Shown piece after piece: positions 1,087 to 41,667 of a stretch of DNA of 64,000 nucleotides. Both the position numbers and the translations under genes were made by a program. The first letter of the stretch is position 1, and each line of letters begins with the position of its first letter. Source of the stretch: Macrostomum lignano (Eukaryota). Location of the stretch: contig NIVC01002741.1 of the NCBI GenBank assembly GCA_002269645.1, forward strand, positions 62,001 through 126,000, written 5' to 3'. Under the pieces are notes generated by a model. The model saw only the letters and a program-made list of their open reading frames with translations. It had not been told where the DNA came from and ran no database searches.

Positions 1087-2120
1087 ATGTGCTCCACAGG
1101 TGTGCTCAAAGCGGCGATGGTGCTGATCGTAGCCCTCCATCCTCTCGCCGGAAACGTGCTAGCTGAGAGAACGTGGCGGCTGAGCCGAGACGGCCTGGCC
1201 GACTATGAGGCTGCTTCTTCGTTTCCGGCACTGAGCGACATCGACTGCATGGCAACTGCAGGCTCGAACCCCGCTGTGCAGCTGGTGACGTTCAGCGCCA
1301 GCTCCGGCCTGTGCGCTCACTTCAGGTGTCGCCTGGGCCTGAGCCACTGCAGGAAGTGCCGCAATGCGAACAAGGGAGCTCAGAAAGTGTGGGTGAGTCA
1401 CTCAGTTCGATATTTCAAGCGTTACGGTGGCTTTAACACAGAAAATAATAGCTGAAACACCTGCGTCCCCTTGCAGACATCCGGCAGTGACTGCTGGACC
1501 ACCGTGCAGCACAGGGTGTCCGGCTCAGTGGACTTTTACCGCAACTGGACTCAGTACCAGAGCGAGTTCGGCGAGGGACCCGACGGAAACTACTGGATCG
1601 GTGAGTGCATCCCAGATCTGCTCCATTCGCTTCCTTTTCCAACTCGGACTTCAATGACAAACACCGCCATGACGTCCGCATCTTCCCAGGCCTGAACTCT
1701 CTCCACGCTCTCACTGCTTCTGGTCCTCGGAAGCTGAGAATCCTGATGAAGGCGTGGAACGACTCTGAGCACTGGGCTGAGTACTCCAGCTTCTCCGTGG
1801 GTGCCGAGTCAGACAACTACCGGCTGAGCGTGTCCGGCTTCTCCGGCAGCGCCGGCATCGGCGACGCGATGTCTCCCCAGAGCGGCATGCAGTTCAGCAC
1901 CAAGGACGCCGATCACGATACGCATTTCGACGGGAGCGGAAGCTGCGCGACCACCTTCATTGGCGCCTGGTGGTTCTCCAGCTGCTTCGCCACCCACCCC
2001 AACGGACGGTACAGAGACTTATCTTCAGCCATTGGCGGCCCGTACGCTCAGGGTGTTATTTGGAAACATCCGTTCGGCCATTACTACTCACTGAAGGAGT
2101 TTGAAATGCTCGTTTTCTAA
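1087..2120 (+). CDS. Secreted fibrinogen-related protein (FReP; ficolin/angiopoietin-like FReD) with a Cys-containing PAN/apple-like N-terminal module, ~286 aa
   Basis: Exons 1087-1392, 1477-1600, 1690-2120; GT-AG introns, phases consistent, 861 nt. Hydrophobic N-terminus. FReD hallmarks [72 protein letters not shown]...NG.Y, GVIW. Confidence 0.9.
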
Positions 2121-3178
2121 TGGAGCAAAAGAATCGATGATGCAATACTAGAGAGTTCTTCAAGTGTTTTATTTGAATTGTTGCGGAACTATGCAATTGT
2201 TTAAACAAACGCCGTGTTTTGTTTGCTGGATGCCGAAGGTCAAAATTTGTTGTTTGAATTTTCCCATAGCGAGTTTATCGACCAGCAGCGGTTTTATTTG
2301 AGATCTCTTGAAAAAGTTGACAAATACAGAGTCGTTAACCCAGAACCACCTTTGAATCACGTGTTGCAGCAATCATTCCTGACAGCATGACAACATAAGT
2401 GACCGCGTACGAAGCAGTCGGCACTGAGCTGTCCTGCAGCCCACCAACTGCGTGAACGAGCCATCCTGCTTTAGTTAACAGCTGGGAGTTAAGTAGTTGA
2501 GCATAAGCAATGGAGCAGAAACAAAGTGAGAGGGTTACAGGAGTTATGATAAAGACTGTTCATTTTTCAAACATGCGCGCACTTTGTGTTGTGAAATGTT
2601 GGCAAATTCAAGGACCACTGTCAAGGACGTGAAACTCAAAGATCGGGTAATTTTTTAGAGGCCGATTTTCTGCATGAATTGCATGAATCTAAGCTAGTGA
2701 AGATTACCTATCTTTTAATATTGTTCGTTTTATGTTATGAGCCCGACTTTTTGTTTTATTTTCCATCTTGAAGTTAATGCCACTTGTGAGTATTTACAAC
2801 TGAAAATGAAAGAAAAGGTAATCTTCTCTATCCCAGATCAAATGCAATCATGGTCTATATGTGATGAAAAATACGATTTCTCCTATCACCACAGTGTATT
2901 TTTCCGGAAAATTGGCCTCCAAAAACTATCCAATCTTTGACACTTACATCCTGCTATACATGTACTACAGTAGTCATTGGGTGCGTGGTGCGCGCACAGC
3001 CTACTGATAAGTGAGTAGCAAAGCTTGCTTGCAGACTTGTCAGTAGTAAAATTCGCTTGACAAGTAAACACGCGATACAACACTGGCAAACAGAATGAAC
3101 TGATAGATTTATGCATATTCATTAAAAGTGCAAAAGGAACACAGAGTGGAGTACAGCCCAGAGGTGCGCTGTCAGAGG

Positions 3179-3409
3179 CTACCAGCGGTAAACTCGATAA
3201 CTTGCCGGACCCGGCTTCCCAGGTGCCTTGGCCTCGGGCCCGAGGTCCATGTCCTCCTCGGCCATGGCCTCCTCCGGCTGCTGCTGGCCGGCCTCGGGCA
3301 GCGGCGCCGCGTCCTCCAGCTGGTCGGGCGCCCAGACGTCGGCCAGCGACAGGTCCGCCAGCAGAAACGCGGCGACGGCGGCGGTGCACAGGTACCAAGC
3401 GAGCTTCAT
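3179..3409 (-). CDS. Intronless secreted prepropeptide A, 76 aa (signal + acidic pro-region + cationic Pro-rich tail)
   Basis: ATG-initiated ORF with a signal-peptide-like N-terminus. Clear paralog at 4821-5054 (shared VWAPDQ, AAPLP, EED.D.GPEAK.PG.P.P). TATAAAG ~50 nt upstream. Confidence 0.8.
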   Translation of the reverse strand: MKLAWYLCTAAVAAFLLADLSLADVWAPDQLEDAAPLPEAGQQQPEEAMAEEDMDLGPEAKAPGKPGPASYRVYRW

Positions 3410-3457
3410 GCTGAGATCTGAGCTGGGAGCTGCGAGCTGCAGCCTCGCGCACCTGAA

Positions 3458-3464
3458 CTTTATA
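3458..3464 (-). promoter_or_regulatory. Candidate TATA box of peptide gene A
   Basis: TATAAAG on the minus strand, ~50 nt upstream of the ATG at 3409. Confidence 0.5.
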
Positions 3465-4029
3465 GAAGCGCAAATTTTTTTTCATTCACCTCACGTGGCT
3501 GAAAACGAGCGCGAAGCCGGGGACTGCTGGTTGTAAACACTTGGACGGGCAATTCATGTGGCTGAGACGAAGCATTGGCGGTCTCCAGTCCAGGTCAGCT
3601 GACTAGACGTCTTTGCTTATCGCACAATGACTTCTTAAGCCTCGAGGCAAGAATTGCTGCATTGTGCCTGGCTTTGGTGGGCGCGTCTTTTGAGCGGCAC
3701 GATGGGACTCGCTTCAATTGAAGATGGAGGCTTTGGAGGCTGTAAACAGCGACCCCAGGCACCTGGCGGCAGCGGGGCAAAACACGTGAGTTCAGGCACA
3801 GTAGTGCGCTCGCATTGCTGCGGTCTTAAAGTATTTGCAAAATGCAACTGAGTTTTCTCGGTTCGAAAAAAAATTTCAGCAGTAAACACAACAGCTGCGA
3901 CACAGAGAATAATGAGGGTCAGCACAAGCGGAGAGAGGAGGGAGGTAGATAGCGAGAGATGGAAGTGGGGAGGTTGAGATGGAAAGGTAACAGGAGAGTT
4001 AAGAGGGGAGAGGCAGAGCGGAGGCACAG

Positions 4030-4690
4030 GGAGGCATAAGGGGGGCAGAGGGAGGCAAGGGAGGCAGTGGGAGGCAGATGGAAACATAAAGGAGGCAGAA
4101 GGATGGCAGTGGGAGGCAGATGGAGGTAGAGGGGGGGCAGCAGAGGGAAAGAGAAGGAGGTAGAGGGGGGGGGCAGCAGAGGGAAACAGGAGGTAGAGGG
4201 GCAGCAGAGGGAAACAGAAGGAGGTAGGGGGGGGGGGTAAAGGGAAACAGGAGGTATAGGGGGGTAGAGGGAAACAGAAGGAGATAGAGGGGGGCAGCAG
4301 AGGGAAACAGAAGGAGGTAGAGGGGGGCAGCAGAGGGAAACAGAAGGAGGTAGAGGGGGGTAGAGGGAAACAGGAGATAGAGGGGGCAGCAGAGGGAAAC
4401 AGGAAGTAGAGGGGGCAGCAGAGGGAAACAGAAGGAGGTAGAGGGGGTAGAGGGAAACAGGAGATAGAGGGGGGCAGCAGAGGGAAACAGGAAGTAGAGG
4501 GGGGCAGCAGAGGGAAACAGAAGGAGGTAGAGGGGGGTAGAGGGAAACAGGAGGTAGAGGGGGGTAGAGGGAAACAGGAGGTAGAGGGGGGTAGAGGGAA
4601 ACAGGAGGTAGAGGGGGGTAGAGGGAAACAGGAGGTAGAGGGGGGGGGGCAGCAGAGGGAAACAAGAGGCAGAGTGGGAGGGGCAGCGGG
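4030..4690. repeat. Purine-rich minisatellite between the two peptide genes
   Basis: Variable ~20-33 bp units built from GGAGGTAGAGGGGG, CAGCAG and AGGGAAACA. Confidence 0.9.
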
Positions 4691-4770
4691 AGGTAGAAGA
4701 AACAAAGACCTGGTGGAAAAAGCTTTAATCAACTGTTTGGCTAGTCAGCAACAGTATATATATTTATGTA

Positions 4771-4776
4771 TTTATT
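4771..4776 (-). promoter_or_regulatory. Candidate polyadenylation signal of peptide gene B
   Basis: AATAAA on the minus strand, ~45 nt downstream of the TGA at 4821-4823. Confidence 0.5.
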
Positions 4777-4820
4777 AGTCAAAGCTTAAGCGGCAGTTCA
4801 CCGTTGCAAAAGAAAGTCGA

Positions 4821-5054
4821 TCAGTTAATATAACGGTTTCGATACACTGGAGGAGGCCGCCCGGGAAACTTGGCCTCAGGTCCAGCATCTTCGAGGTCTT
4901 CCTCATCTGGAGTCCAGTCTCCTGCCACCGGCTGGTCATCAGGCAGTGGCGCAGCGCCGTCTGCGAGCTCCTGGTCGGGCGCCCAGACCTCGGCCAGAGC
5001 CGGACTTGACAGAAGCTGCAGCAGCAGCAGGGCGGCAGCGAGTCGCCAGTTCAT
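4821..5054 (-). CDS. Intronless secreted prepropeptide B, 77 aa (paralog of A)
   Basis: The likely start is the internal ATG at 5054 (MNWRLAAALLLLQLLSSPALA), not 5453. Acidic pro-region, then KFPGRPPPVYRNRYIN. Aligns with gene A. Confidence 0.8.
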   Translation of the reverse strand: MNWRLAAALLLLQLLSSPALAEVWAPDQELADGAAPLPDDQPVAGDWTPDEEDLEDAGPEAKFPGRPPPVYRNRYIN

Positions 5055-6144
5055 CTGTCTCAGAGTTTCTCCGCAGACAGTTTTATTCCCAGCTGTACTT
5101 GCCACAGACTGACTCAGTGCTTGAGTGAGTTGAGTGAGCAGAGGGTCGCCATAGGCATATTTGAAAGCGTGAGCTTTTAAATGAGCTTTGATACTCGTAT
5201 TCTCGTAATTGGCTCGGAGCGAAGATACACAACTGGCTTGAGTACAATAGCAGAATGAGGTCCAGCAGAGCAGAGCTAAACTAGCCGTTAATGACAGAAC
5301 GACTTTCGATTGACTCGTGTGATCAAGCTCAACAAATTGTCTAGGAGTCCGGAACTTGGCCTTTTGGCTCGTAACTTGTAAAGTTGTAGGGCTTGCGTGC
5401 TTTATAGACGATTGCAACTTGTAGTGACTACTATAGTGATAAGAGACAGCCATTAACTAGATTTTGCATCAACAGGAGAGTTGATCAGTAACACTAGAAA
5501 GTTGTTATCGATACATATCGGAGACTACCTGAACCAGCTCAGCCGTCAGAGGTCTCCAATTATTGGGAAAGTTAAGAGAGCTCAGAGATAAGCTGTATAA
5601 AGGAAGCAGCCAGGATATTTTCTATTGCACAGCTAACCAGAATCAAATTAGCACAGCTGGTACACAATTAAATTTCACTAATAATTATATTAGTCAAATT
5701 TTTGCAATTAACAAAGACTAGAATTGAAACAGGATAAGCACGAATAACAGGCTGTGTATTATTCAAGGTCAAGGCGGGCATGTAAATAAATTGCAAATTG
5801 ATCTCAATAAATTACAAAATTCTACCAGTCAGTAATCATACTACTGAATAGGGGAAATGAGTAGTCAAACGAATTCGCAACCGAAATTTATAAATTTTGA
5901 ACATTTTTTGTACAAATTTGCAATGCCAGTCAAGCAGTTGTGACCAGATCTGACAGTAATAAGGGCAATAAATCACTGAGATTCAATCCCGTTTATCATG
6001 CACTCTCTACGAAGTTTAATTTGCTACATATCGGCAAAATAGATTAATATTATTTTTAGAGAATCTAGGGAATGATAAGGTTTGGAATCTAGCTGAAGAC
6101 TGAGTGAAGAGTAATAATGTTATGGGACGGGGAAGCTTAGATTG

Positions 6145-6569: not shown

Positions 6570-8297
6570 TCAGTGAGTCTCCTTGGCCAGCCAGTCCACC
6601 TTGGCCCGGCGCAGGTGATACAGCTGCCTGGCCTCTGAGTACTGCCGGACAAAGCCGGCCATGTCCAGGCCGCCAGTGGCCAGAGCCTCGGCCAACGACT
6701 CTGCCTGCTCGTCCGCCTCCATGCAGGCGGCCTCCAGCAGGGTGAGCAGTGTGTCCGGGCTGGCCGCCGAGTTCAGAGACTCCAGCCGGCTGCGCGTTTC
6801 TAAGAAAACGGCGCGCTGAGCGTCGGCCTCGTCCGACAGCGCGGCCAGGCGGCGCCGGCTCTCCTCGATGCGCGGCCCCAGGGCGAAATTCAGCTCGGCC
6901 ATCTGCCGGTTGGCCGCCATGGCTGCCTGCTTGGCCTGGCCGAGTTGCTGCAACTGCGGGGGCGGCCGGGGTCTCAGTGAGATCTCTGGCTGAGACTCGC
7001 TAGGTGAGAGTCTAGGGAGTCTGGGCGAGAGTCTGGGTGAGTCTGCGTGAGTCTGGGTGAGTTTGCGTGAGAGTCTGGGCGAGAGTCAAGGTTAGTCTGG
7101 GTGAGAGTCAAGGTGTCTGAATGAGAGTTTAGGTGAGAGTCTGGGTGAGTCTAGGTGAGTCTGGGTGAGTCTAGGTGAGAGTCTGGGTGAGTCTAGGTGA
7201 GAGTCTAGGTGAGTCTAGGTGAGTCTAGGTGAGAGTCTAATTAAGTATAGGTGAGAGGCTAGGTGAGAGTCTATGTAAGTATAGGTGAGAGGCTAGGTGA
7301 GAGTCTAGGTGAGTCTGGGTGAGTCAAGGTGAGAGTCTAGGTGAGAGTCTAGGTGAGTCTAGGTGAGTCTAGGTGAGAGTCTATGTAAGTATAGGTGAGA
7401 GGCTAGGTGAGAGTCTAGGTGAGAGTCTAGGTGAGTCTAGGTGAGAGTCTATGTAAGTATAGGTGAAAGTCTAGGTGAGAGTCTAGGTGAGTCTGGGTGA
7501 GTCAAGGTGAGAGTCTAGGTGAGTCTAGGTGAGTCTAGGTGAGAGTCTAGGTAAGTATAGGTGAGAGTCTAGGTGAGAGTCTAGGTGAGTCTGGGTGAGT
7601 CTAGGTGAGAGTCTGGGTGAGTCTAGGTGAGAGTCTGGGTGAGTCTAGGTGAGTCTGGTACTCTGGGTGAGAGTCTGGGTGAGTCTGGGTGAGAGTCTGG
7701 GTAAGTCTAGGTGAGAGTCTGGGTGAGTCTAGGTGAGAGTCTGGGTGAGTCTGGGTGAGTCTGGGTGAGAGTCTGGGTGAGTCTAGGTGAGAGTCTGGGT
7801 GAGTCTGGGTGAGAGTCTGGGTAAGTCTAGGTGAGAGTCTGGGTGAGTCTAGGTGAGAGTCTGGGTGAGTCTGGGTGAGTCTGGGTGAGTCTAGGTGAGA
7901 GTCTGGGTGAGTCTAGGTGAGAGTCTGGGTGAGTCTGGGTGAGTCTGGGTGAGAGTCTGGGTGAGTCTAGGTGAGAGTCTGGGTGAGAGTCTGGGTACAT
8001 GTAAGTCTAGGTGAGTCTGGGTGAGTCTAGGTGAATCTATGTGAGTCTGTGAGTCTATGTGAGTCTGGGCGGAGAATTCGGGGCTCTCACCTCGCCGCTA
8101 CCGGAGGTCATCTCGGCCACCTTGTCATCCGAGTCCAGCAGCTTCTGCAGCTCCTCCTTGTCCATGCGCTTCAGCTGAGCCAGGAGGCTGTCGAGGCCGC
8201 TGCCACCGCCGCAAGCAACGGCGCCAACTTCGTAGGCAGGCGGCGGCTGCTGCTGGGACTGGGGCTGACCACCGTACAGACTGTAGTTCGGGTACAT
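6570..8297 (-). CDS. VPS37: ESCRT-I subunit VPS37-like (Mod(r) domain), ~196 aa
   Basis: Exons 8297-8091 and 6953-6570 (phase 0, GTGAG/ccgcAG). C-terminal LLTLLEAACMEADEQAESLAE..FVRQYSEARQLYHLRRAK matches the Mod(r) pattern; LDSDDKV..LQQL..AANRQMAELN matches the VPS37 N-terminal helices. Confidence 0.85.
6990..8070. repeat. 10/12-bp minisatellite filling the VPS37 intron
   Basis: GAGTCT(A/G)GGT(GA) units. Confidence 0.95.
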
Positions 8298-8354: not shown

Positions 8355-9232
8355 ACTGCATCTCCAGGGTGCTGACCCACTGAATCTCCGGAGTGCTGAC
8401 CCACTGCATCTCCAGGGTGCTGACCCACTGCATCTCCAGGGTGCTGACCTACTGCATATCCAGGGTGCTGACCCACTGCATCTCCAGGGTGCTGACCCAC
8501 TGAATCTCCGGAGTGCTGACCCACTGCATCTCCAGGGTGCTGACCCACTGCATCTCCAGGGTGCTGACCCACTGCATCTCCAGGGTGCTGACCTACTGCA
8601 TATCCAGGGTGCTGACCCACTGCATCTCCAGGGTGCTGACCCACTGCATCTCCAGGGTGCTGACCTACTGCATATCCAGGGTGCTGACCCACTGAATCTC
8701 CAGGGTGCTGACCCACTGCATATCCAGGGTGCTGACCCACTGCATCTCCAGGGTGCTGGCCCACCAAATCTCTAGGGTGCTGACCCACTGCATATCCAGG
8801 GTGCTGACCTACTGCATCTCCAGGGTGCTGACCTACTGCATCTCCAGGGTGCTGGCCCACCAAATCTCCAGGGTGCTGACCCACTGCATAGTCAGGGTGC
8901 TGACCTACTGAATCTCCAGGGTGCTGACCTACTGCATATCCAGGGTGCTGACCCACTGCATATCCAGGGTGCTGACCTACTGCATCTCCAGGGTGCTGGC
9001 CCACCAAATCTCTAGGGTGCTGACCCACTGCATATCCAGGGTGCTGACCTACTGCATATCCAGGGTGCTGACCTACTGAATCTCCAGGGTGCTGACCCAC
9101 TGCATCTCGAGGGTGCTGGCCCACCAAATCTCTAGGGTGCTGACCTACTGCATATCCAGGGTGCTGACCCACTGCATCTCCAGGGTGCTGGCCCACCAAA
9201 TCTCTAGGGTGCTGACCTACTGCATCTCTAAG
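8355..9232. repeat. 24-bp minisatellite upstream of VPS37
   Basis: ctccagggtgctgacccactgcat, ~36 copies. Confidence 0.95.
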
Positions 9233-9644: not shown

Positions 9645-10650
9645 GGGGATGATTTGGGAGGTTGCGACGATTCGAAAAGTTTCGCGGATTTAAGGAGTTT
9701 TTGGGATTTGGGAAGTTTTGTGGATTTGGGAGGTTTTTGGGATTTGGGAAGTTTTGGGGATTGGGGAGTTTTGGGGGATTGGGGAGTTTTGGGGGATTGG
9801 GGAGTTTTAGGGGATTGGGGAGTTTTGGGGGATTGGGGAGTTTTAGGGGATTGGGGAGTTTTAGGGGATTTGGAAGTTTTGGGGGATTGGGGAGTTTTAG
9901 GGGATTTGGAAGTTTTGGGGGATTGGGGAGTTTTAGGGGATTTGGAAGTTTTGGGGGATTGGGGAGTTTTGGGGGATTTTAAGAAGTTTTGTGGATTTGG
10001 GAAGTTTTGGGGGATCGGGGAGTTTTGGGGGATTTTAAGAAGTTTTGTGGATTTGGGAAGTTTTGGGGGATTGGGGAGTTTTGGGGGATTGGGGAGTTTT
10101 AGGGGATTTGGAAGTTTTGGGGGATTGGGGAGTTTTAGGGGATTTGGAAGTTTTAGGGGATTGGGGAGTTTTAGGGGATTTGGAAGTTTTAGGGGATTGG
10201 GGAGTTTTAGGGGATTGGGGAGTTTTAGGGGATTTGGAAGTTTTGGGGGATTGGGGAGTTTTAGGGGATTTGGAAGTTTTGGGGGATTGGGGAGTTTTGG
10301 GGGATTTTAAGAAGTTTTGTGGATTTGGGAAGTTTTGGGGATTGGGGAGTTTTGGGGGATCGGGGAGTTTTGGGGGATTTTAAGAAGTTTTGTGGATTTG
10401 GGGAGTTTTGGGGGATTGGGGAGTTTTGGGGGATTGGGGAGTTTTAGGGGATTTGGAAGTTTTGGGGGATTGGGGAGTTTTAGGGGATTTGGAAGTTTTA
10501 GGGGATTGGGGAGTTTTAGGGGATTTGGAAGTTTTAGGGGATTGGGGAGTTTTAGGGGATTTGGAAGTTTTAGGGGATTGGGGAGTTTTAGGGGATTTGG
10601 AAGTTTTAGGGGATTGGGGAGTTTTAGGGGATTTGGAAGTTTAGGGGCAT
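9645..10650. repeat. 18-bp G-rich minisatellite (G-quadruplex-prone)
   Basis: Alternating ggggattggggagtttt(a/g) and ggggatttggaagtttt(a/g) units. Confidence 0.95.
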
Positions 10651-10771
10651 TTTGGAAATCATAGGATTATGAAAGCAACCTTTAATAACAAAGAAAATAG
10701 GCAAACGGCGAGAGCAACTATTTCCGCACTTTGTACACAAAGTGCCTCGTCATCTGAACAGTGCTGCCAGA

Positions 10772-12079
10772 TCATTTATTTTTGTCAGCAGCCGATGCGG
10801 CGGCAGGGGAGGGCAGGACGAAGACGCACTGCTCGGAGCCAAATGGCGAGTTGGCCTTGCCAGCGTGAATGATGGAGGGCAGCTGGAAGCCGGGCTCGTG
10901 CAGGAAAGACCGCTTCACAGCAATGGGGAGGCCGGCTTTGGCCGCCGCCTCCAGGGACTTGCCGCCGAACAGGTTGCGAAAGCTGGCGTCGAGGATCCTG
11001 GGATTGGATTCAACAGAACGCAGGTCCTCGCTCATGATGAACATGGGGATGGTGCCCGGCCGCTCGTGACTGAAGCGACACGTGTTCAGGTAAGCCTGGG
11101 ATCGAATCGGACGCGAGTGGGCGAGTTAATTTACATATGATTCACGAGCATTCACACAGGATTCACGCGCATTCACACAGGAGTCACACAAAATTCACAA
11201 GATTCACGCGCATTCACACAGGATTCACGCGCATTCACACAGGAGTCACACAAAATTCACAAGATTCACGCGCATTCACACAAGATTCACGCGCATTCAC
11301 ACAGGATTCACACAAGATTCACACATGATTCACGCGCATTCACACAGGAGTCACACAAGATTCACACATGATTCACACGAATTCACACATGATTCACGCG
11401 CATTCACACAGGATTCACACAAGATTCACAAGATTCAAACGCAATCACACAGGAGTCACACAAGATTCACACATGATTCACGCGCATTCACACAGGAGTC
11501 ACACAAGATTCACACATGATTCACACGCATTCACACATGATTCACGCGCACTTAAACAGGATTCATGCGCATTCACACATGATTCACGCGCATTCACACG
11601 AATATTCACTAATCCAATTGACATGCGCAGCGAGTTCACACAGAGTCAGGTGAATTTAAACATATAATTATTTTTATCTTCACGCATTCACACGAGTTCA
11701 CAAATTTTGCACTCGCCTGTCCACTTGTCGAGCTGCCCACAGTTCCCAGCACCAGATGAGGCAGAGTTGGCAAGCTGCTGAGATCCCTAGGCGCCTTGGC
11801 ATAGGCCATGTCATCGGCCTTGCTAAACTGAGTGCCCAGATGCTCGGCGAACGCGGCCCAACGCCGGATGTCCTGCAGCCGGTGGCACTGCGGCCGGTGC
11901 CGCTGCCAGTCGCTCCGCTGGCAGTCGCGGCCGCAGTACCAGACGCCGCTGCAGCCGCCGCAGCGCTTGCACTCGGCTGGCCGGCGGCACAGGTTGCAGG
12001 GCAGCTCGGAGGGCAGCCGCAGCGCCGCCGCAATGGACGAGCCGTCCCGACTGGCCGCTGCCGAACTCTCGGAGGCCAT
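10772..12079 (-). CDS. MYND zinc-finger protein with an unassigned C-terminal domain, ~228 aa
   Basis: Exon 12079-11717 encodes CNLC..CKRCGGCSGVWYCGRDCQRSDWQRHRPQC (zf-MYND). Exon 11095-10772 joins in phase 0 through a predicted GC-AG intron (CAG|GCGAGT ... tcccAG). Confidence 0.75.
11135..11620. repeat. ATTCAC(A/G)C-based degenerate array in the MYND gene intron
   Basis: attcacacagg/attcacgcgc/attcacacaag/attcacacatg units. Confidence 0.9.
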
Positions 12080-12249
12080 GCGACCTGCGGCACAAGTTCT
12101 CAAGCCCGAATCTGCTCTAAGTGCGCGGCTGAGATGTGTCTATTTTACACTCTTTCTCACCTGGAATTACAGATCCATTTGGAGCTACTCAATGGGCTGC
12201 TGATTTTTTTCAAATGGCGGTCAATGGGGATCAATAGATTATTCTATGA

Positions 12250-12900
12250 CTGTCTGTGACCAGCCTCATGTGACTGTCAGTGACCCACCTCATCATGCGA
12301 CTGTCAGTGACCAACCTCATGTGACTGTCAGTGGCAAGCCCCATGTGACTGTCAGTGACCCACCTCATCATGACTGTCAGTGACCCACCTCATGTGACTG
12401 TCAGTGACCCACCTAATGTGACTGTCAGTGACCAACCTCATCATGTGACTGTCTGTAACAAGACCCATGTGACTGTCAGTGACCCAGCTCATCATGTGAC
12501 TGTCTGTAACAAGACCCATGTGACTGTCAGTGACCCAGCTCATCATGTGACTGTCTGTAACAAGCCTCATGTGACTGTCTGTAACAAGCCTCATGTGACT
12601 GTCTGTAACAAGCCCCATGTGACTTTCAGTGACCAACCTCATCATGTGACTGTCTGTAACAAGACCCATGTGACTGTCTGTAACAAGACCCATGTGACTG
12701 TCTGTAACAAGACCCATGTGACTGTCAGTGACCAACCTCATCATGTGACTGTCTGTAACAAGACCCATGTGACTTTCAGTGACCAACCTCATGTGACTGT
12801 CTGTAACAAGCCCCATTTGACTGTCATGACCAACCTCATGTGACTGTCAGTGACAAACCCTATGTGACTGTCAGTGACCCACCTCATGTGACTGTCACCT
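12250..12900. repeat. ~21-24 bp minisatellite upstream of the MYND gene
   Basis: catgtgactgtcagtgacccacct and catgtgactgtctgtaacaagacc units. Confidence 0.95.
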
Positions 12901-14623: not shown

Positions 14624-15883
14624 TCACAGCCTCTTCTTAAGCTGGGAGTCGCCTTTATCGTCTTGACCGTCCTCAGCGGCGGACATCTCTGAATCGCTGC
14701 GACTGTCCTTTGTATTGGGGTCCTGAGTGACCACGGATAGGGCGATGCGAAGGATAAAGTAGAACCAGATCACGTGCAGCACCTGTAGAACAAGCAGACA
14801 ACCATTAAACATGTACCACGATCTGAAGGGTCCAATAATGGCCCAGCTGTGGAACATGGCACTGTAGACAACCCAGAACGGGTAGATGGTGAGCCTGGTG
14901 ACGATCCAGCAGACCATGAACACCACAAACATCATGTCTCGAAGACGGGTGTTGCTGCTAGCATAGGTCAAGCACTTGGTCAGGTGCATAAACGGATCAA
15001 CCACGTCGTGAATTAGCACGACCAGAGCTCCAATGCGGACATAGTTCAAGCACCAGCTGAAGGACATCAGGCACACAGTGACCACGTGATGGATCAGCAT
15101 CTCCGCAAAATCCTTGTGCTTGACGTCGGTGAAAATGTAGTACATGGCGGACCAGTAGTAGCCCAGGGAGATCATGTAATACCAGTAGATGTCTGCGTCC
15201 ATTGCTTGGTCCGGCCAGCCAATCCAGCAGTACCGGGCATCCCAGAAGTAGTCCTTGCCTGCGTAGAGAGGGTTTCATGTAATAAGTGGTAGAGATTAAA
15301 GCGTTCTAGCAAGAGAGGGAGTCAGGATACAGTCTGGAGGTTTGGGAGGGAAGCTACAAGGATACGGCAAGCAAATGCAGCAGTAGGCGGATTCGAACTC
15401 AAGCACGGCCCCAAACGCACCAACGAGAACGGCGAAGCCATACACCAGAATGCAGCTGTAGTGCAGGAAGAACCACGCGCTCTCCACAAACTTCCTCAGC
15501 GTGGAAGACTTCAGCTGATTTCGCTTCCTGCGAAACCAGTTAGCGACCGATTTGTCCGACCAGCCCAGCTCGCCGGCCAGAGCCGACATCTGATCGACTG
15601 TCGGTCGCCGGTTCAGTCTAAAAATGGCGTCAAGTCGCTTGTTTGGCGTCACTGGCCTGACGGCATCCTTCGGTGCATCGGCGAGGCCCCAGCGCCTGCC
15701 CAGGGGGAACAGCAGGAAGGTCTCAACCAGGTAGCGCAGTAGGCAGAACGCCAGGCCGCACGCCAGCGACATTGTCAGGTGAACTGGCTGCGGCGTCAGC
15801 CGGCCGTCAGGTCTGGAGGCGTATAGGCGAGCCCAGCTGATGTTGGCTGGCAGCCACATCTCCTCGCTCAGCAGGGCGTCCAT
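14624..15883 (-). CDS. CERS: Ceramide synthase (LASS/Lag1, Hox-like + TLC domain), copy A, 365 aa
   Basis: Exons 15883-15421 and 15258-14624 (phase 1). N-terminal WLPANISW, Hox-like region (LAGELGWSDKSVANWFRRKRN), KFVESAWFF, WYYMISLGYYWS, Lag1 motif KHKDFAEMLIHHVVT..GALVVLIHDVVDPF, acidic KDSRSDSE tail. Confidence 0.95.
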
Positions 15884-15964
15884 GCTATCGGGTTTGGGGC
15901 GGCGGCAAGTCTGGCGCAGTCTGTTCACCGATTCTTTGCGGGGCTCCGGGGCGCTGAAACAGGG

Positions 15965-16495
15965 AGTGTTGGCTGGATTGTGCTGACTGTACATCGGGCT
16001 GGCTTGTGCTGAGTGTACATTAGCTGGATTGCACTGAGTGTACATTGGGCTGGCTTGTGCTGAGTGTACGTTGGGCTGGCTTGTGCTGAGTGTACGTTGG
16101 ACAGGGGGTTGGCTGCACTGAGTGTACATTGGGTTGGCTAGCAGTGAGTGTACATTGGGCAGGGGGTTGGCTGGCAGTGAGTGTACATTGGGCAGGGGGT
16201 TGGCTAGCAGTGAGTGTACATTGGACAGGAGTTGGCTAGCAGTGAGTGTACATTCGGCAGGGGTTGGCTAGCAGTGAGTGTACATTGGGCAGGGGTTGGC
16301 TAGCAGTGAGTGTACATTGGGCAGGGGTTGGCTAGCAGTGAGTGTACATTGGGCAGGGGTTGGCTAGCAGTGAGTGTACATTGGGCAGGGGTTGGCTAGC
16401 AGTGAGTGTACATTGGGCAGGGGTTGGCTAGCAGTGACTGTACATTCGGAAGGGGGTTGGCTAGCAGTGAGTGTACATTGGTCAGGGGGTTGGCT
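15965..16495. repeat. TGTACATTGG-family minisatellite upstream of CerS A
   Basis: gcagtgagtgtacattgggcaggggttggcta units (~31 bp) and related units. Confidence 0.95.
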
Positions 16496-18116: not shown

Positions 18117-20527
18117 TTATTTATGCTTGAAGTCGACTCTATCGTCTAGAACGTCTTCAGTGGCGGACATCTCTGAATCGCTGCGACTATCCTTAGCGTC
18201 GGGGTCCTGAGTGACCACGGATAGGGCGATGCGAAGGATAAAGTAGAACCAGATCACGTGCAGCACCTGTAGAACAAGCAGGCAACCATTAAACATGTAC
18301 CACGATCTGTAGGGTCCAACAATGGCCCAGCTGTGGAACATGGCACTGTTGACAACCCAGAACGGGTAGATGGTGAGCCTGGTGACGATCCAGCAGACCA
18401 TGAACACCACAAACATCATGTCTCGAAGACAGGTGTTGCTGCTAGCATAGGACAAACACTTGGTCAGGTGCATGAACGGATCAACCACGTCGTGTACAAG
18501 AAGAACGAGAGCTCCGATGCGGACATAGTTTAAGCACCAGCTGAAGGACATCAGGCACACAGTGACCACGTGATGGATCAGCATCTCCGCAAAATCCTTG
18601 TGCTTGACGTCGGTGAAAATGTAGTACATGGCGGACCAGTAGTAGCCCAGGGAGATCATGTAATACCAGTAGATGTCCGCGTCCACTGCTTGGTTCGGCC
18701 AGCCAATCCAGCAGTACCGGGCATCCCAGAAGTAGTCCTTGCCTGCGTAGTGAGGGAGATATCAAGGTCAGGGGGAGATTTCAGCGTCCCAAGGAAATAG
18801 ATGTGCCGGGTGGTGGCGTTTCTTGATTCTCACAGCAAAGTGGAATTCAATCGATTTCACTGTTGCACTTATGGCCGAGCCTGCTTCTCGTGTGCCAGAC
18901 GGAGTAACGGTGAGCGCAAAAAACTCCTTGAGAGTCTATACTTCAATCAAGGGCATAACAATGGCATTGCGAATTCGCGGTCAACAGTGTACTGGGGGAC
19001 GCAAAGCAGCTTCAGTGCAAATGCGTTGCGTGCAAAGAACGTTCAGAATCAGATTTTCACACTGAGCTAGCAAAGGTTGCCGACAAAGTGCATTGTGAAA
19101 CCTGCTTGAAGTACCGGACATACGCTCGTAGAACGCTTGGATGTCAGAGGTAGCAATGAACGATGGATTGATCGGTAGGACGTTGTTTATCTTTGATGTA
19201 CGGGTCTATTTGGCTCGATGGATACGGTTTATTGCGATTTCTGAGATTACTCAATGCCCAGAAAGATGAGATTACAGCCCGAATGCATTAGGAATCGTAG
19301 TTCAAAGCCAAGATAAACGTTTGCTGTTTGAACAAGAGACAAATATATTATTTTCTTACCAAAGCTTATACAAAATGGAAGACCCATCTCATGATTTTGA
19401 ACTCTTTCTACACACCAACTATAGGTGAAATGAAAACGGAGGAGTGTCTTAGTTCTGACTGAATCGACGCCAATAAATATTTTATGTTAATAAACGTCAG
19501 CTGCAAGTTCATAAAAAAGCTATCGGCGGATACAAGCGCTTTACTGAGACTGCTACCGACGCGTCAAGTAAAAAATTATACCCAGCTCGGAAAGTACATG
19601 CACAATGGGCTTTTGCAACCTTGACCCCCGGACTCAAGGCTGTCGCAGCACCTGGACTCTGTACAGCATGAAATCGAGAACATCACGATCGGCCTTAATC
19701 AAGTTTACAGACGAAGTGAGGCAACGAAAACATGTTCCTTGCTTACAATCAAGTCATGCCTCCAGCACCAACTACTTCATGACCAAGACTGATGCCATGT
19801 AAGCATTCGATTCAGTAGATGCTTCCCTATGATTGACAAGGAGGTGCCTTTAGCTGGTGCATTGCAATGAAGCGCCTCAGTTGGCGGCATCGACTCGCCA
19901 AGCAGCTTATTCCGAACTACACACCAATATTTCTTTATTAATGAACAATTGTTGGCAGAAAAATTCAGCCGCATCCAGTTTTGACCAATGAAAAATTGCA
20001 TTTCCTTCTCTTGTAAATAGTGCAACAGTACATAAATCGGGGGCAGATCAGGCCCCAAACGCACCAACGAGGACGGCGAAGCCATACACCAGAATGCAGC
20101 TGTAGTGCAGGAAGAACCACGCGCTCTCCACAAACTTCCTCAGCGTGGAAGACTTCAGCTGATTTCGCTTCCTGCGAAACCAGTTAGCGACCGATTTGTC
20201 CGACCAGCCCAGCTCGCCGGCCAGAGCCGACATCTGATCGACTGTCGGTCGCCGGTTCAGTCTAAAAACGGCGTCAAGTCGCTTGTTTGGCGTCACCGGC
20301 CTGACGGCATCCTTCGGTGCATCGGCGAGGCCCCAGCGCCTGCCCAGGGGGAACAGCAGGAAGGTCTCAACCAGGTAGCGCAGTAGGCAGAACGCCAGGC
20401 CGCACGCCAGCGACATTGTCAGGTGAACTGGCTGCGGCGTCAGCCGGCCGTCAGGTCTGGAGGCGTATAGGCGAGCCCAGCTGATGTTGGCTGGCAGCCA
20501 CATCTCCTCGCTCAGCAGGGCGTCCAT
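18117..20527 (-). CDS. CERS: Ceramide synthase, copy B, 362 aa
   Basis: Exons 20527-20065 and 18742-18117 (phase 1, 1322-nt intron). Same motifs as copy A, intact frame. Confidence 0.93.
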
Positions 20528-21670: not shown

Positions 21671-22549
21671 AAAGAGTGAGTTTAGAAAACACGGAAGTCA
21701 AAGGCAGATGAGGCGCAGTCGTATTACAATGATCGTTTATTACAGACTATAAGCGCAGTGTGACCCAACAGGACCAATACTCGAGGCGATTAAATAGCGA
21801 AGCTAATAAACAAAAAATCGATAAGAATAACAATAAAACATCGGACAGATTCGATAAGATATAATTAACAAAATTTCAGGGAACAAGTATGTATATATTA
21901 TGCATAGCTTGACAGACTGAGACGCCAGGTGCGCTAAATGAACTAGGAATTGTAATTAAAAGGTCCGAAATGTAAAGCAGCTCATACTTTTACATAAAAA
22001 TGGTGCAGCGATAATGAAAAACGCGAATTACCAACATCTGCGATAAAACTGCTAAGTGGAGCAGCGAGAGTAGCAATGCAAGTAAAAAATTCTCCTTCCA
22101 GCGAATAATCAATAAATCATAAACAATAAGCCGCTAAACTACTTTTAACCTAACACAGGCTTTGCAAAGCGAGAATTGCTCTACTGGCAGTAGTAAGAAG
22201 AGAATTTCATCTCTGTTTGGGATATATATAGAGCTAAAACTTGCAGAGCATGGCAAGTTAGGTAGATATTTCCAATTGAAAAGAAACTTCTGATGACTAG
22301 GCATTATGCACAGTGCGTACGCCTGCAAAGCATTGGTTACGACGGGAAATAAACAAAGCAATGAAAATAATTTCTACTTATGGTTAAAAGTTGCTAGTAG
22401 TATATATTGCGCATGTGAACTGCGAGAGCGAGTGGGCGGCTCTGGCGAAGAATTGCTGCAAAAGTCTTCGGAGCGACCTTGCCGCCTCATTGGTTCCAGG
22501 TTTTGGCTTCTGCAAGTGAAATTTCAGTATGGGATGACTTATTTGCTAT

Positions 22550-23452
22550 TGGAAATGACAGGCCTGAAGGAACAGGAAATGACAGGCCTGAAGGAACAGG
22601 AAATGACAGGCCTGAAGGAACAGGAAATGACAGGCCTGAAGGAACAGGAAATGACAGATCTGAACAGGAAATGGCAGGCAGCAACAGGAAATGACAGGCC
22701 TGAAGGAACAGGAAATGACAGGCCTGAAGGAACAGGAAATGACAGGCCTGAAGGAACAGGAAATGACAGGCTTGAAGAAAAAGGAAATGAAGGCCTGAAG
22801 GAACAGGAAATGACAAACCTGAAGGAACAGGAAATGACAGGCCTGAAGGAACAGGAAATGACAAACCTGAAGGAACAGGAAATGACAGGCTTGAAGGAAC
22901 AGGAAATGACAGGCCTGAAGGAACAGGAAATGACAGGCTTGAAGGAACAGGAAATAACAGGCCTGAAGGAACAGGAAATGACAGGCCTGAAGGAACAGGA
23001 AATGACAGATCTGAACAGGAAATGGCAGGCAGCAACAGGAAATGACAGGCCTGAAGGAACAGGAAATGACAGGCCTGAAGGAACAGGAAATGACAGGCCT
23101 GAAGGAACAGGAAATAACAGGCCTGAAGGAACAGGAAATGACAGGCCTGAAGGAACAGGAAATGACAGATCTGAACAGGAAATGGCAGGCAGCAACAGGA
23201 AATGACAGGCCTGAAGGAACAGGAAATGACAGGCCTGAAGGAACAGGAAATGACAGGCCTGAAGGAACAGGAAATGACAGGCCTGAAGGAACAGGAAATG
23301 ACAGGTCTGAAGGAACAGGAAATAACAGGCCTGAAGGAACAGGAAATGACAGGCCTGAAGGAACAGGAAATGACAGGCCTGAAGGAACAGGAAATGACAG
23401 GCCTGAAGGAACAGGAAATGACAGGTCTGAAGGAACAGGAAATGACAGACCT
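22550..23452. repeat. 24-bp minisatellite immediately 3' of the TBC1D24-like stop
   Basis: gaaatgacaggcctgaaggaacag, ~36 copies with 3 recurring interrupt blocks. Confidence 0.97.
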
Positions 23453-23471
23453 ACCAGTTACAGCCAGCAGT

Positions 23472-25562
23472 TCAGTCGCCTCGCTCATCAAAGCCCAGCA
23501 GCTCCACAGCCTGCACAGCGAATCGACACTCAGCTCCCGGCAGCAGCGGCTGAGAGTCGAACGTGGCGCAGCGCTGGCTGAAGCCTTCGCTCAGTTCGCG
23601 GTTGAGGCTGAGACCGAAGCCGCCGCCGCCACCGCCAATCACCAGGGAGTTCGGCTCCGCCATGATGAACAAGGCCTCCGTATGCTGCTGCTGTTGCTGC
23701 TGTTGCTGCTGGCAGGATGAATTCTGAGTTTGTTAGATGAATGCGATTCCCGGTCTCCACTGAGCCCCTGAAAAGGTACTCAGTCCTACAGACAGGTCCT
23801 CAGTCCTACAGACAGGTCCTCAGTCCTACAGACAGGTCCTCAGTCCTACAGACACGTCATTAGACAGGTCCTCAGTCCTACAGACACGTCATCAGACAGG
23901 TCCTCAGTCCTACAGACGCGTCATCAGACAGGTCCTCAGTCCTACAGACACGTCAGGACCTTAGTCCTACATCGCTACCCAATGCAGGCAGGTGCTACAG
24001 CAACCCTAGCAGATTAAAGGCCGGTCGTAATGACCAGAAGCATCACCTGTTGCCGATGCCCCACCCAGGTGTAAACTCGGACATCTCCGTCTCGCTCTCC
24101 CACTGTGGTGAACAAGAAAGTCTCGCCGGTGCCGAAGAAGGCGGCCGGGTGCTGCTCCCTATCGCTCAGGGCGGTGCACAGGTAGGCGCCGAAAGTGCCG
24201 CTAACGGAGCCGCTTCTCACAAGCAGGAGCAGCGGAGAGTTCTTGCCGGCGGCTGAGTACAGCGTCTGCAGGTTGAAGCCGGCCGAGGCTGTGGAGAACA
24301 GCGAGGCCAGCGGCTTGATGGCGTGACGGGCCGGCACGTGGCGCAGCAACTGGCGCAGCTGCTTCTCAGTTAGCAGGGCGCTGGGGCTGCTCAGGGGAAG
24401 GCAGAGAAGCCAGTCGTCTGTGGCGCTCCTGCGGATGGGCGATTAAATAATCTCAATAACCTTTGCCTCTGTGTAGGTCTGTACGAGCTAGTTATAGGGT
24501 CCTAAAGATTCGTGTCAGGTCCTAGGAATTCGTGTCAGATCCTTTAGATTTGTCAGGCCCTAAGAATTTTTGTCAGGTCCTATGAATTCGTGTCAGATTC
24601 TAGAGATTTTTCAGGTTCTAGGACTTCGTGTCAGATCCTATGGATTTGTGTCAGGCCCTAGGAATTTTTGTCAGGTCCTATGAATTCGTGTCAGATCCTA
24701 TAGATTTGTGTCAGGCCCTATGAATTCGTGTCAGATTCTATAGATTTCTGTCAGGTCCTAGGAATTCGTGTCAGATTCTATAGATTTCTGTCAGGTCCTA
24801 GGACTTCGTGTCAGATTCTATAGATTTCTGTCAGGTCCTAGGAATTCGTGTCAGATTCTATAGATTTCTGTCAGGTCCTAGGACTTCGTGTCAGATTCTA
24901 TAGATTTCTGTCAGGTCCTAGGAATTCGTGTCAGATTCTATAGATTTCTGTCAGGTCCTAGGACTTCGTGTCAGATTCTATAGATTTCTGTCAGGTCCTA
25001 GGACTTCGTGTCAGATCCTATAGATTTCTGTCAGGTTCTAGGACTTCGTGTCAGATCCTATAGATTTGTCAGGTCCTAGGAATTTGTGTCAGAAACTAGG
25101 AATTTGTTACGTACAAAAACAGCAATCAGCCGAAAACCCGAAAATCAATTATTGCATTGAACACCAGAGCATCGCGCCACAAGCCTTCCTCACCTGGCCG
25201 CGCGAAGTCCAGTCGGCAGCTCGGCCAGCAGTGTCTGGTTGGGCACGGCGTTGGCGGCGGTCACCACGTCGGCGGACTGCAGGTTGCGGATCTGGAACAT
25301 GGCCCTCGTGAACTGCTCCACCGACACGTACACGCCCAGGCCCTGCGCTGTTTCACTAAGCGTCGCCCCCAGGCTGTCGTCCAGGCCGGCCAGGGCGGCA
25401 GAGCCGGACGAGGAGCGCTGGCGGATTCGCTTCTTGAAGGACAGGCGGCACAGCGCCAGGCCGGCGCGGACCAGCACCTGAAAAGGGAGCGTTTGGAATG
25501 TCCAACCTGTCTGTCTGCCTGTCCATCTATCTATTTATCTATGTATTTGTGTATCTATCTAC

Positions 25563-36300: not shown

Positions 36301-36652
36301 ACAGCTCGATGTAGCGCCGGCCCATGTTCTGCCTGTGCAGCCGCAGGCCCGAGTTGGCCGCCTCAACCGACTCGAATTCGGCGTAGCCCTCGCCGGAGGG
36401 GCGGCCGGCCTTGTCCCGCGACAGGTGGACGCCGGACTCGCCGCCGCGCAGCGGGCAGTCGGCAAAGAAGGCCACGACGTCGGCCGGTGTGGCGTCATAG
36501 GGCAGGCCGCGCATCCGCAGCACGCAGGTGGTGGCGGTCCGGCCACTGCCAGGCTGCTGCACAGCTGAATTGTTCTGCTCGGAGGAAGTCTTGGAGGATT
36601 TTGAGTTGGAAGAGGCGGAGCCTTCGCCAACAGCCACGTTGCCGCTGGACAT
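30379..36652 (-). CDS. HNRNPF: hnRNP F/H (glorund-like) protein with four quasi-RRMs and a Gly/Tyr/Arg-rich linker, ~524 aa
   Basis: Exons 36652-36191, 35884-35653, 33310-32915, 32065-31613, 30410-30379 (1575 nt, phases 0,1,1,1). qRRM motifs LRMRGLP...GRPSGEGYAEF...NMGRRYIELF; WQSSTGHWVHLRGLPF is typical of hnRNP F/H qRRM3. Exon 3 is an RGG/GY low-complexity region. F versus H assignment is not resolvable. Confidence 0.9.
30440..31590. repeat. 30-bp minisatellite in the last hnRNP F/H intron (G-tracts on the sense strand)
   Basis: Plus strand ccacccagtctccccaattatcctcatctc, ~37 copies. Confidence 0.97.
32250..32850. repeat. ~31/38-bp array in hnRNP F/H intron 3
   Basis: ctcagctctgtacaagctgtactcagccata units. 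Confidence 0.95.
33345..35515. repeat. 16-bp minisatellite (~2.2 kb) in hnRNP F/H intron 2
   Basis: gggtgacagtggcatt and variants, >130 copies. Confidence 0.97.
35915..36085. repeat. Degenerate ~22-bp array in hnRNP F/H intron 1
   Basis: ggcgatttcgtggtggattttag-like units. Confidence 0.75.
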
Positions 36653-38859: not shown

Positions 38860-39176
38860 ACAACAGACAACAACAACAGAGTACGCTGCCAGTTCACAAA
38901 AGCAACGTCAGATGGCGTGCTTCAAAGCTTGGGCGCGAACAAAGGCCGCATCGCCGGCAGAGTCCGGGGCGCCGGCGTCAGCCAGCAGACAGTTGACGTA
39001 GCGCCGAGTCCTCGCCTGTCCCCGCCGGTAGGGTGCCTGCAACGTAAGTAGCAGCACCTCCTACATCGGCTCCGGACAGTAGGCCTCGGCGCGGATGATG
39101 TGGCCTGCCAGCTGGAGTCGCCGATGGCGCAGCAGATTGCTAGGACGGGCCAGGCCGGCGCGATGATAGAGCGCCG
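38860..39176 (-). mobile_element. 5'-truncated RTE-like non-LTR retrotransposon (ORF2 C-terminus + short 3' tail)
   Basis: GC-rich island in AT-rich DNA. Minus frame reads LYHRAGLARPSNLLRHRRLQLAGHIIRAEAYCPEPM*EVLLLTLQAPYRRGQARTRRYVNCLLADAG, the RRL.AGH..R...RRG pattern of post-RT LINE C-termini. One in-frame stop; terminal TGA at 38909-38911; (TTG)n-like tail. Confidence 0.75.
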
Positions 39177-41176: not shown

Positions 41177-41575
41177 TAGAGGTCGGACGGAATTGAAATC
41201 TCTAGGCGGGATCGGGATCAGGAATAATTTTTTTCTCAAGATCGGGATTAGGATTGGGATTTGAGAATCAGGATCAGGTCTTTTAGTGTATTGTCCATGT
41301 AAAGTTAAACAAAATTGAGAAAAGATTGTCAAGATCAAGAAGTAAAACACAACAAAATTGATATGAAGTTTTGTAACTAATAAAGTAAATAATGTAACGA
41401 GTACAAGTTAAAGCAAAATACTTTCAAGTAATCACAAATTCTATAAATGTTTAATAAAAAGACCTGTTCTTAAATCTCGAGTTTTTTAGGGTTGGGATTC
41501 TAGTCCCGCGGGAATTCAATTTTCTTCGGGATCCCGAGATTTCAGGATCGGGATCGGGATCCCGTCCAACCTCTA
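41177..41575. mobile_element. hAT-type MITE, 399 bp
   Basis: TIRs TAGAGGTCGGACGG / CCGTCCAACCTCTA (13/14 match). Flanks GTTGTTAT / GTTATTAT form an 8-bp TSD with 1 mismatch. Subterminal GGGATC repeats. Confidence 0.8.
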
Positions 41576-41667
41576 GTTATTATATACAAAGTGCACTAAG
41601 AACATTAATATATATATATATATTAGGCCTACCAATTTTGCATAAATATATATAACTTTAGTATTGC

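Follow-up and report, generated by a model that had tools for sequence, protein, structure and literature searches.

A tandem pair of orphan genes in the flatworm Macrostomum lignano encodes predicted secreted acidic peptides with short basic tails

What do two small, neighbouring genes of the flatworm Macrostomum lignano appear to export from the cell, and which part of each product is likely to matter? The question is raised by a 64-kb stretch of DNA from contig NIVC01002741.1 of assembly GCA_002269645.1 (Mlig_3_7), the whole of which is called the window here. Two related open reading frames (ORFs) lie in tandem on its minus strand, and a first-pass annotation had read them as a new family of defence-peptide precursors in which an acidic propiece is followed by a cationic, Pro-rich tail of 16 amino acids (aa). 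We consider it probable that ORF1 and ORF2 are a lineage-restricted pair of paralogues coding for secreted, disordered, acidic peptides that leave the cell intact or after slight trimming, and that the acidic body is under functional constraint. The parts of the two genes are as follows, with the length of ORF2 counted from the first ATG inside its transcript model.

3179-3409, minus strand: ORF1 coding sequence (CDS), 76 aa plus TAG, MKLAWYLCTAAVAAFLLADLSLADVWAPDQLEDAAPLPEAGQQQPEEAMAEEDMDLGPEAKAPGKPGPASYRVYRW; NCBI homeolog model Mlig020697.g1 (PAA66256.1)
3341-3409, minus strand: ORF1 predicted signal peptide, aa 1-23, with Lys2 in the n-region, a hydrophobic core and S-L-A at positions -3 to -1; Kyte-Doolittle maximum 2.62
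3230-3340, minus strand: ORF1 acidic region, aa 24-60 (37 aa), with 12 D/E, 0 K/R/H and a net charge of -12
3182-3229, minus strand: ORF1 cationic tail, aa 61-76, KAPGKPGPASYRVYRW, with 4 K/R, a charge of +4 and 19% Pro
4821-5054, minus strand: ORF2 CDS, 77 aa plus TGA, MNWRLAAALLLLQLLSSPALAEVWAPDQELADGAAPLPDDQPVAGDWTPDEEDLEDAGPEAKFPGRPPPVYRNRYIN; NCBI homeolog models Mlig025628.g1 and Mlig023285.g1 (PAA85456.1, PAA66257.1)
4992-5054, minus strand: ORF2 predicted signal peptide, aa 1-21, with Arg4 in the n-region, a Leu-rich core and A-L-A at positions -3 to -1
4872-4991, minus strand: ORF2 acidic region, aa 22-61 (40 aa), with 14 D/E, 0 K/R/H and a net charge of -14
4824-4871, minus strand: ORF2 cationic tail, aa 62-77, KFPGRPPPVYRNRYIN, with 4 K/R, a charge of +4 and 25% Pro

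As a description of these parts the first-pass annotation is accurate. Its coordinates and strand for both ORFs are exact, and its residue counts for the two pro-regions and the two 16-aa tails are right. Read from signal peptide through acidic region to tail, the ORF1 product consists of MKLAWYLCTAAVAAFLLADLSLA, DVWAPDQLEDAAPLPEAGQQQPEEAMAEEDMDLGPEA and KAPGKPGPASYRVYRW, and the ORF2 product of MNWRLAAALLLLQLLSSPALA, EVWAPDQELADGAAPLPDDQPVAGDWTPDEEDLEDAGPEA and KFPGRPPPVYRNRYIN. Signal peptides were read by inspection, using the (-3,-1) rule and the Kyte-Doolittle scale. Each ORF opens with a signal-like hydrophobic segment, as had been proposed. In ORF1 the segment is made of MK, LAWYLCTAAVAAFLLADL and SLA before Asp, and in ORF2 of MNWR, LAAALLLLQLL and SSPALA before Glu (Kyte-Doolittle maximum 2.5). 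By these rules both segments are predicted to be cleavable signal peptides, and the remainder of each protein is hydrophilic, with no downstream transmembrane segment.

Removal of the signal peptide would leave a secreted part of 53 aa (5.8 kDa) for ORF1 and 56 aa (6.2 kDa) for ORF2, each with an isoelectric point of ~4. The net charge of these predicted products is -8 and -10, respectively, and all four basic residues of each lie within the last 16 aa. There is no Cys after the signal peptide in either protein, and disorder-promoting residues make up 73-79% of the predicted secreted products. AlphaFold2 models only the signal-peptide helix (ORF2 residues 3-15); elsewhere the predicted local distance difference test score is 54-60 and there is essentially no secondary structure.

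The two ORFs belong together. Reciprocal tblastn within the window pairs them at E 3.5e-10 and 44-51% identity, a similarity beyond chance that makes them true paralogues and agrees with the tandem related pair of the earlier description. The same type of search finds no third copy in the 64 kb. The tandem pair is present on three contigs of the assembly, with order and orientation kept: NIVC01000326 (L001), NIVC01001574 (L002) and NIVC01002741 (L003). Mod_r, zf-MYND and ceramide-synthase genes lie upstream of it on all three, and the window does not differ from L003 across both genes. The ORF1 CDS is the same in L001 and L003, and L002 differs by 8 nt. These contig copies are homeologous or allelic, and the family consists of two paralogues, each in three such copies.

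All three contigs carry models of both ORFs (Mlig020697.g1 for ORF1; Mlig025628.g1 and Mlig023285.g1 for ORF2). The ORF2 protein is 100% identical to PAA85456.1, "hypothetical protein BOX15_Mlig025628g1" of Macrostomum lignano, and the flatworm origin supposed in the first-pass annotation is correct. Gene models of Mlig_3_7 were built from RNA-seq and transcriptome assemblies (StringTie/TACO/TBONE), with the CDS assigned by TransDecoder (PMC5730564), and therefore provide indirect evidence that ORF1 and ORF2 are transcribed. The recorded models are extended on the 5' side ("partial"), and these extensions mark transcript 5' ends, which lie ~18-33 nt upstream of the ATG for ORF1 and 93-102 nt upstream for ORF2. 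On three contigs the span of the gene models matches the length of the ORFs, and both CDSs are therefore contiguous and unspliced, in keeping with the description of the genes as intronless.

Selection on the pair was estimated from nonsynonymous (dN) and synonymous (dS) divergence. Over the secreted part, the paralogues give a dN of 0.43, a dS of 1.29 and a dN/dS of 0.33. By region the ratio is 0.30 for the acidic part, 0.40 for the tail and 0.72 for the signal peptide, with dS values of ~1.2-1.3 that are near saturation. Measured from L002, the most diverged copy, the CDSs differ by 2.6-3.5% whereas the flanks differ by 5-11%. The GC content of third codon positions (GC3) is 0.87 in ORF1 and 0.60 in ORF2, inside the 0.57-0.93 range of neighbouring bona fide exons. 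The dN/dS values, the comparison of CDS with flanks and GC3 thus argue that ORF1 and ORF2 are genuine protein-coding genes, with purifying selection acting over the whole secreted length.

Where within the product does the constraint fall? The first-pass annotation held that the pro-region is conserved while the tail diversifies, and the comparison does not bear this out. Identity is 21 of 34 aligned positions in the pro-region and 7 of 15 in the tail (Fisher p=0.36), with dN/dS values of 0.30 and 0.40, respectively. The most divergent region is the signal peptide, in which 8 of 21 positions are identical. Comparison of the three genomic copies yields only six amino-acid replacements, of which signal peptides carry three, tails two and a pro-region one; these are too few to test. 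The acidic part is constrained at least as much as the tail, above all at its N-terminus, [D/E]VWAPDQ, and at the junction with the tail, GPEAK-x-PG-[KR]-P-x-P. The shared motifs at this junction had been written somewhat too strictly: EED[ML].D.GPEA fits ORF2 only and K.PG[KR]P.P..YR fits ORF1 only, and a one-residue indel is needed for both.

The strongest conservation is concentrated in one short block.

3320-3346, minus strand: 27-nt conserved block of ORF1, identical at 26 of 27 nt to its ORF2 counterpart at 4971-4997, minus strand

This block encodes L-A/[D/E]-V-W-A-P-D-Q, with the slash marking the predicted signal-peptidase site, and so spans that site and the N-terminus of the secreted product. 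No other element of the family is as well conserved, whether amino acids or nucleotides are compared. Identical codons are used at all 7 conserved residues inside the block and at 11 of 26 conserved residues elsewhere (Fisher p=0.007, a post hoc comparison). The block points to a functional role of the N-terminus of the acidic part, to a constraint at the nucleotide level, or to a small gene-conversion tract.

How would such proteins be processed? Neither ORF1 nor ORF2 carries a dibasic site ([KR][KR]), a G[KR][KR] site, a rule-conforming monobasic site or a C-terminal Gly. The features of classical amidated neuropeptides are thus absent, as had been noted before. The first-pass annotation instead invoked trimming by dipeptidyl aminopeptidase (DPAP) in the manner of promelittin and apidaecin. 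A DPAP ladder has Ala or Pro at every second position, with no gap between the cut by signal peptidase (or at a dibasic site) and the start of the mature peptide. In promelittin, which served as the control, X-Ala or X-Pro dipeptides fill 11 of 11 steps, whereas they fill 3 of 18 in the ORF1 pro-region, whose 37 aa are also an odd number, and 7 of 20 in that of ORF2. The ladder is missing over 80-90% of the pro-region, and trimming of this kind does not fit the sequences. DPAP-type dipeptides beside the tail Lys are limited to GP-EA in ORF1 and DA-GP-EA in ORF2, and no endoprotease site, basic or other, is recognizable upstream of them.

Intact or lightly trimmed secretion appears most likely because there is no convertase site, there is no DPAP ladder, and the acidic part is at least as constrained as the tail. 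In the model that we favour, each gene is a compact TATA-driven unit with an unspliced CDS for a preproprotein of ~76 aa. The protein would enter the secretory pathway, lose its signal peptide by cleavage behind SLA or ALA, and be released from a secretory or gland cell type as an extracellular peptide. The acidic body would most likely contribute to the function of the molecule and not serve as a spacer to be discarded. Cleavage after GPEA is a conjecture. Because the junction is conserved and the basic residues are confined to the tail, release of the basic 16-mer by some protease stays plausible, if somewhat unlikely.

The distribution of the family is narrow. No relatives outside M. lignano were found by single-sequence and profile searches of 5.8 billion proteins, nor by an exhaustive search of 1.84 billion representatives with an HMMER profile, which recovered the two M. 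lignano clusters alone. Three extra HMMER matches (P0007-P0009) were rejected because they fall on repeats or low-complexity sequence of long, unrelated proteins, DRPVAGDW for example. Pfam gave no family at E<=10, and the best matches in a PDB sequence search, at E ~0.7-0.8, are at chance level. These results agree with the earlier statement that no known family is recognized.

Several points weigh against secretion of an intact acidic peptide by a lineage-restricted pair. The signal peptides of ORF1 and ORF2 are predicted by rule-based judgement. The region-wise estimates of selection are imprecise, since they come from two paralogues only and dS is near-saturated. The placement of all basic residues in the last 16 aa, next to a conserved junction, resembles the design of a pro-piece with a mature peptide, and intact secretion may be wrong. 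Other Macrostomum species are probably unrepresented in the databases, and "orphan" therefore means without relatives outside the genus, not necessarily outside the species. Finally, no expression-level, tissue or peptide data for ORF1 or ORF2 were found in the searchable literature and supplements. The gene IDs Mlig025628, Mlig023285 and Mlig020697 and the peptide strings are absent from searchable full texts, which is a weak negative, as the ID of the window copy itself may not be among them. They are likewise absent from the supplements of PMC5816591, PMC12896417, PMC5730564, PMC7336406, PMC12732829, PMC6410801 and PMC5977470, again a weak negative.

Among the other explanations, the one put forward in the first-pass annotation makes the pair host-defence precursors, antimicrobial or toxic. 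The acidic propiece would mask a cationic Pro-rich 16-mer, which would be freed after GPEA with the help of DPAP and would then act on microbes, possibly intracellularly like the proline-rich antimicrobial peptides (PrAMPs) of the apidaecin class. The layout of acidic body and basic tail, with Lys and Arg confined to the last 16 aa, is kept in both paralogues, and the dipeptides just before the Lys are of the DPAP type. Promelittin and apidaecin precursors share with the pair a signal peptide, an anionic stretch rich in Pro, Ala, Glu and Asp, and a cationic linear peptide with ...PEA directly before it. However, apidaecin precursors are multi-copy and have RR before each EAEPEAEP spacer, whereas ORF1 and ORF2 each encode a single copy, have no dibasic site and offer no endoprotease site that would expose GP-EA. 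In addition, a propiece of -12 or -14 does not match a tail of +4 in charge, which speaks against a neutralizing propiece.

Is the tail then a PrAMP? According to Welch et al. 2020 (Box 1, PMC7736402), PrAMPs have at least 25% Pro and a net charge of at least +1, and the PRP motif is indicative but not essential. The same source requires activity against microbes and a target inside the cell, DnaK and/or the 70S ribosome (PMC7736402). For tails whose cleavage is hypothetical, the ORF2 tail with 4 Pro in 16 residues (25%) lies on the threshold, and the ORF1 tail with 3 in 16 (19%) falls below it. The hypothetical 16-mers have a charge of +4, whereas the whole encoded secreted polypeptides are below the charge criterion. 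There is no PRP motif in either tail. The earlier label "Pro-rich" is thus marginal, holding for the ORF2 tail by proline content and failing for that of ORF1.

The ORF2 tail does have one match of interest. In comparison with a panel of PrAMP sequences, FPGRPPPVYRNRYIN of ORF2 is identical at 9 of 15 positions to residues 12-26 of arasin 1, FPGRPKPIFRPRPCN (the arasin 1 sequence was verified in PMC7736402). The two share the pattern FPGRP-P---R-R--N, and the ORF2 tail is short, linear and cationic, with 25% proline. The alignment scores 53, a value that none of 3000 composition-preserving shuffles attained; this statistic is optimistic because arasin was added post hoc, after the resemblance had been noticed. 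The matched stretch lies mostly inside arasin 1(1-23), a fragment that keeps nearly full activity (PMC3543460). By contrast, the ORF1 tail is dissimilar, and its score against the PrAMP panel was reached by 1154 of 3000 shuffles. The PrAMP resemblance is a lead for one paralogue, ORF2, and not a property of the family. Arasin also differs in having a Cys-rich C-terminal domain, which is not in ORF1 or ORF2, and its precursor, which is not known to have an acidic propiece, passes from signal peptide directly to mature peptide.

A different comparison is with precursors of the amphibian preprodermaseptin type and the Hydra arminin type, in which a conserved anionic pre-pro region precedes a variable cationic C-terminal peptide and which are taxonomically restricted. 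The order of signal, acidic propiece and cationic C-terminal peptide is the same here, and so is the taxonomic restriction. Unlike these precursors, however, ORF1 and ORF2 have no Lys-Arg site, their signal peptide is the least and not the most conserved part, and variability in their tail does not significantly exceed that in the propiece. A mature peptide cut from them would also be a Pro-rich 16-mer and not an amphipathic helix. We consider it unlikely that the pair are defence-peptide precursors. The mechanism originally proposed, which combines DPAP trimming, a neutralizing propiece and a diversifying Pro-rich antimicrobial tail, is mostly unsupported and in part contradicted.

We are equally doubtful that ORF1 and ORF2 encode precursors of non-amidated neuropeptides or peptide hormones, lineage-specific and processed by a non-canonical route in neurons or neurosecretory cells. 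Their small size, signal peptide, lack of Cys, disorder and acidic spacer all fit, and the conserved N-terminal and junction motifs could be bioactive peptides or signals for processing or sorting. Flatworm neuropeptide prohormones (npp/spp, NPF) are likewise small and secreted, contain acidic spacers and in many cases occur in this phylum only. However, ORF1 and ORF2 differ from them in lacking dibasic sites, amidation signals and similarity to NPF or NPY, quite apart from the absence of rule-conforming monobasic sites. No orthologues of them were found in other flatworm proteomes either, whereas flatworm neuropeptide families are usually phylum-wide. Compared with NPY, PYY and three flatworm NPFs, the tails score no better than shuffles (706 of 3000 and 2486 of 3000 reach the observed score). 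They show no similarity to luqin, neurotensin, bradykinin, tachykinin or any further neuropeptide in the comparison. Also considered was a hidden exon downstream, extending ...RYIN to an NPY-like ...RHYINLITRQRY; it was rejected, since the CDS models stop alike on the three contigs and the NPY/NPF similarity is at chance level.

A further explanation is that the genes code for fast-evolving exocrine gland products that are secreted whole (seminal-fluid or prostate, pharyngeal, cement or epidermal) and act on a partner or a substrate. Small, taxonomically restricted, predicted secreted proteins without homologues suit such a role, and compact TATA-driven genes are, by our own inference, what is usual for secretory products with strong expression in particular tissues. 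In Macrostomum, genes linked to reproduction are reported to be fast-evolving (PMC7336406, PMC8662610). However, the paralogue dN/dS of 0.33 indicates constraint and not rapid adaptive change, and neither the peptide nor the DNA strings occur in the supplements of a prostate in situ screen, a weak negative given that these are small files. We hold out little prospect for this explanation as well.

It is very improbable that the two ORFs are non-coding, as chance frames in GC-rich transcribed DNA or as decaying pseudogenes. In favour of such a reading, the GC-rich segments hold further long ORFs that overlap in other frames or on the opposite strand, and the window is full of repeat-generated spurious ORFs. 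Against it, this frame alone is conserved between the paralogues, and the low dN/dS is reached with dS near saturation. Both ORFs are uninterrupted in each of the three genomic copies, the CDS is less diverged than the flanks, and the signal peptide, the context of the start codon and the stop are all kept. The overlapping Arg/Gly/Ala-rich ORFs in other frames are GC-rich shadows.

If the acidic peptides are secreted intact, one specific function can be named, but it would be a very long shot. Wudarski et al. (PNAS 2019, PMC6410801) predicted that the releasing glands of M. lignano discharge an unidentified "small negatively charged molecule". In their model (PMC6410801), this molecule neutralizes the Lys/Arg-rich cohesive protein Mlig-ap1, and the animal detaches. 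The intact anionic 5.8/6.2-kDa peptides might conceivably be this detachment factor, to which their fit is physicochemical only: small, predicted secreted, disordered and with a net charge of -8 to -10. Against it, the releasing vesicles are reported to contain PAS-positive polysaccharide and to have a low protein density (PMC6410801).

The sequence around the two genes supplies the remaining elements of compact transcription units.

3459-3464, minus strand: TATAAA box of ORF1, 50-55 nt upstream of the ATG and ~22-46 nt upstream of the model 5' ends
5174-5181, minus strand: TATA-like element of ORF2, TTTAAAAG, ~25-34 nt upstream of the transcript-model 5' ends
5208-5212, minus strand: CCAAT box of ORF2
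4771-4776, minus strand: poly(A) signal of ORF2, a canonical AATAAA, 45 nt past the stop codon

These putative core promoter and poly(A) elements are correctly placed relative to the model 5' ends. The longest transcript-derived model of ORF2 (P0003) starts at 5156, which is 25 nt downstream of the TATA-like box. The 120 nt upstream of the ORF1 ATG have zero substitutions across the three contigs. The poly(A) hexamers of ORF1 are variants only, AATGAA at 3118-3123 and CATAAA at 3108-3113. A 1-nt indel lies at position 3474, where the window and L003 have a T that is missing from L001 and L002. Without the T, an upstream ATG (window position 3485) is in frame with ORF1 and gives a 101-aa ORF in L001 (12010-12315). 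This ATG is upstream of the TATA box, and thus it is probably not transcribed.

About half of the 1.4-kb spacer between ORF2 and ORF1 is a minisatellite (4010-4687) that is C/T-rich on the gene strand, with a unit of ~27-30 nt in ~18.5 copies. Its length varies among the three genomic copies, and it yields spurious Pro/Ser/Leu-rich ORFs of 248-365 aa. Elsewhere in the window, dense minisatellite arrays occupy 7008-8069, 8355-9228, 9678-10652, 11128-11599, 12352-12843, 22300-23700 and 30440-31500, and further arrays occupy 32900-35600, 48280-49360, 50250-52000, 53350-54050, 57540-58200 and 58600-59500. Most lie within introns or between exons of adjacent genes. They produce repeat ORFs of up to 1045 aa in several frames on both strands, and every ORF longer than 300 aa in the window is derived in this way.

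Some 1.1 kb beyond the 3' end of ORF1, and oppositely oriented, is a 171-aa ORF (1605-2120, plus strand) that strongly matches positions 76-217 of the 221-position Fibrinogen_C profile (E 3.9e-32). L001-L003 list no model at the corresponding position; this ORF may be an unannotated exon, gene or pseudogene. Ceramide-synthase-like tandem duplicates with a TLC domain and a homeodomain are found at 14624-16129 and 18117-20527 (minus strand), with nearly identical exons. Other genes in the window include a zf-MYND gene at 11636-12103 and exons of an RRM protein at 31566-32111 and 36128-36652 (all minus strand), and MAGUK/PDZ-type exons (guanylate kinase, PDZ) within 46841-59865 (plus strand). An AT-rich block spans 38000-46000, where the GC fraction is 0.26-0.42 with its minimum of 0.26 at 44-46 kb; the rest of the window averages ~0.5. 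An Rfam scan of the whole window returned zero RNA families.

The pair consists of uncharacterized orphan genes for small secreted prepropeptides, of which there are many in the genome; it is real and testable and not in itself surprising. To our knowledge, free-living flatworms have almost no characterized secreted effector peptides. The pair offers a clean, compact, lineage-restricted family of predicted secreted peptides with an unusual charge-bipolar design. M. lignano is a tractable model with RNA interference, transgenesis and in situ hybridization, and since the promoters are defined within ~200 bp, reporter constructs would be easy to make. If the basic tail is a released antimicrobial peptide, Pro-rich defence peptides would extend to Platyhelminthes, with a non-dibasic processing route, and the model of the first-pass annotation would give the first PrAMP-like defence peptide of a flatworm. 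If instead the acidic body is the active part, the family may have a bearing on the question of the flatworm detachment factor.

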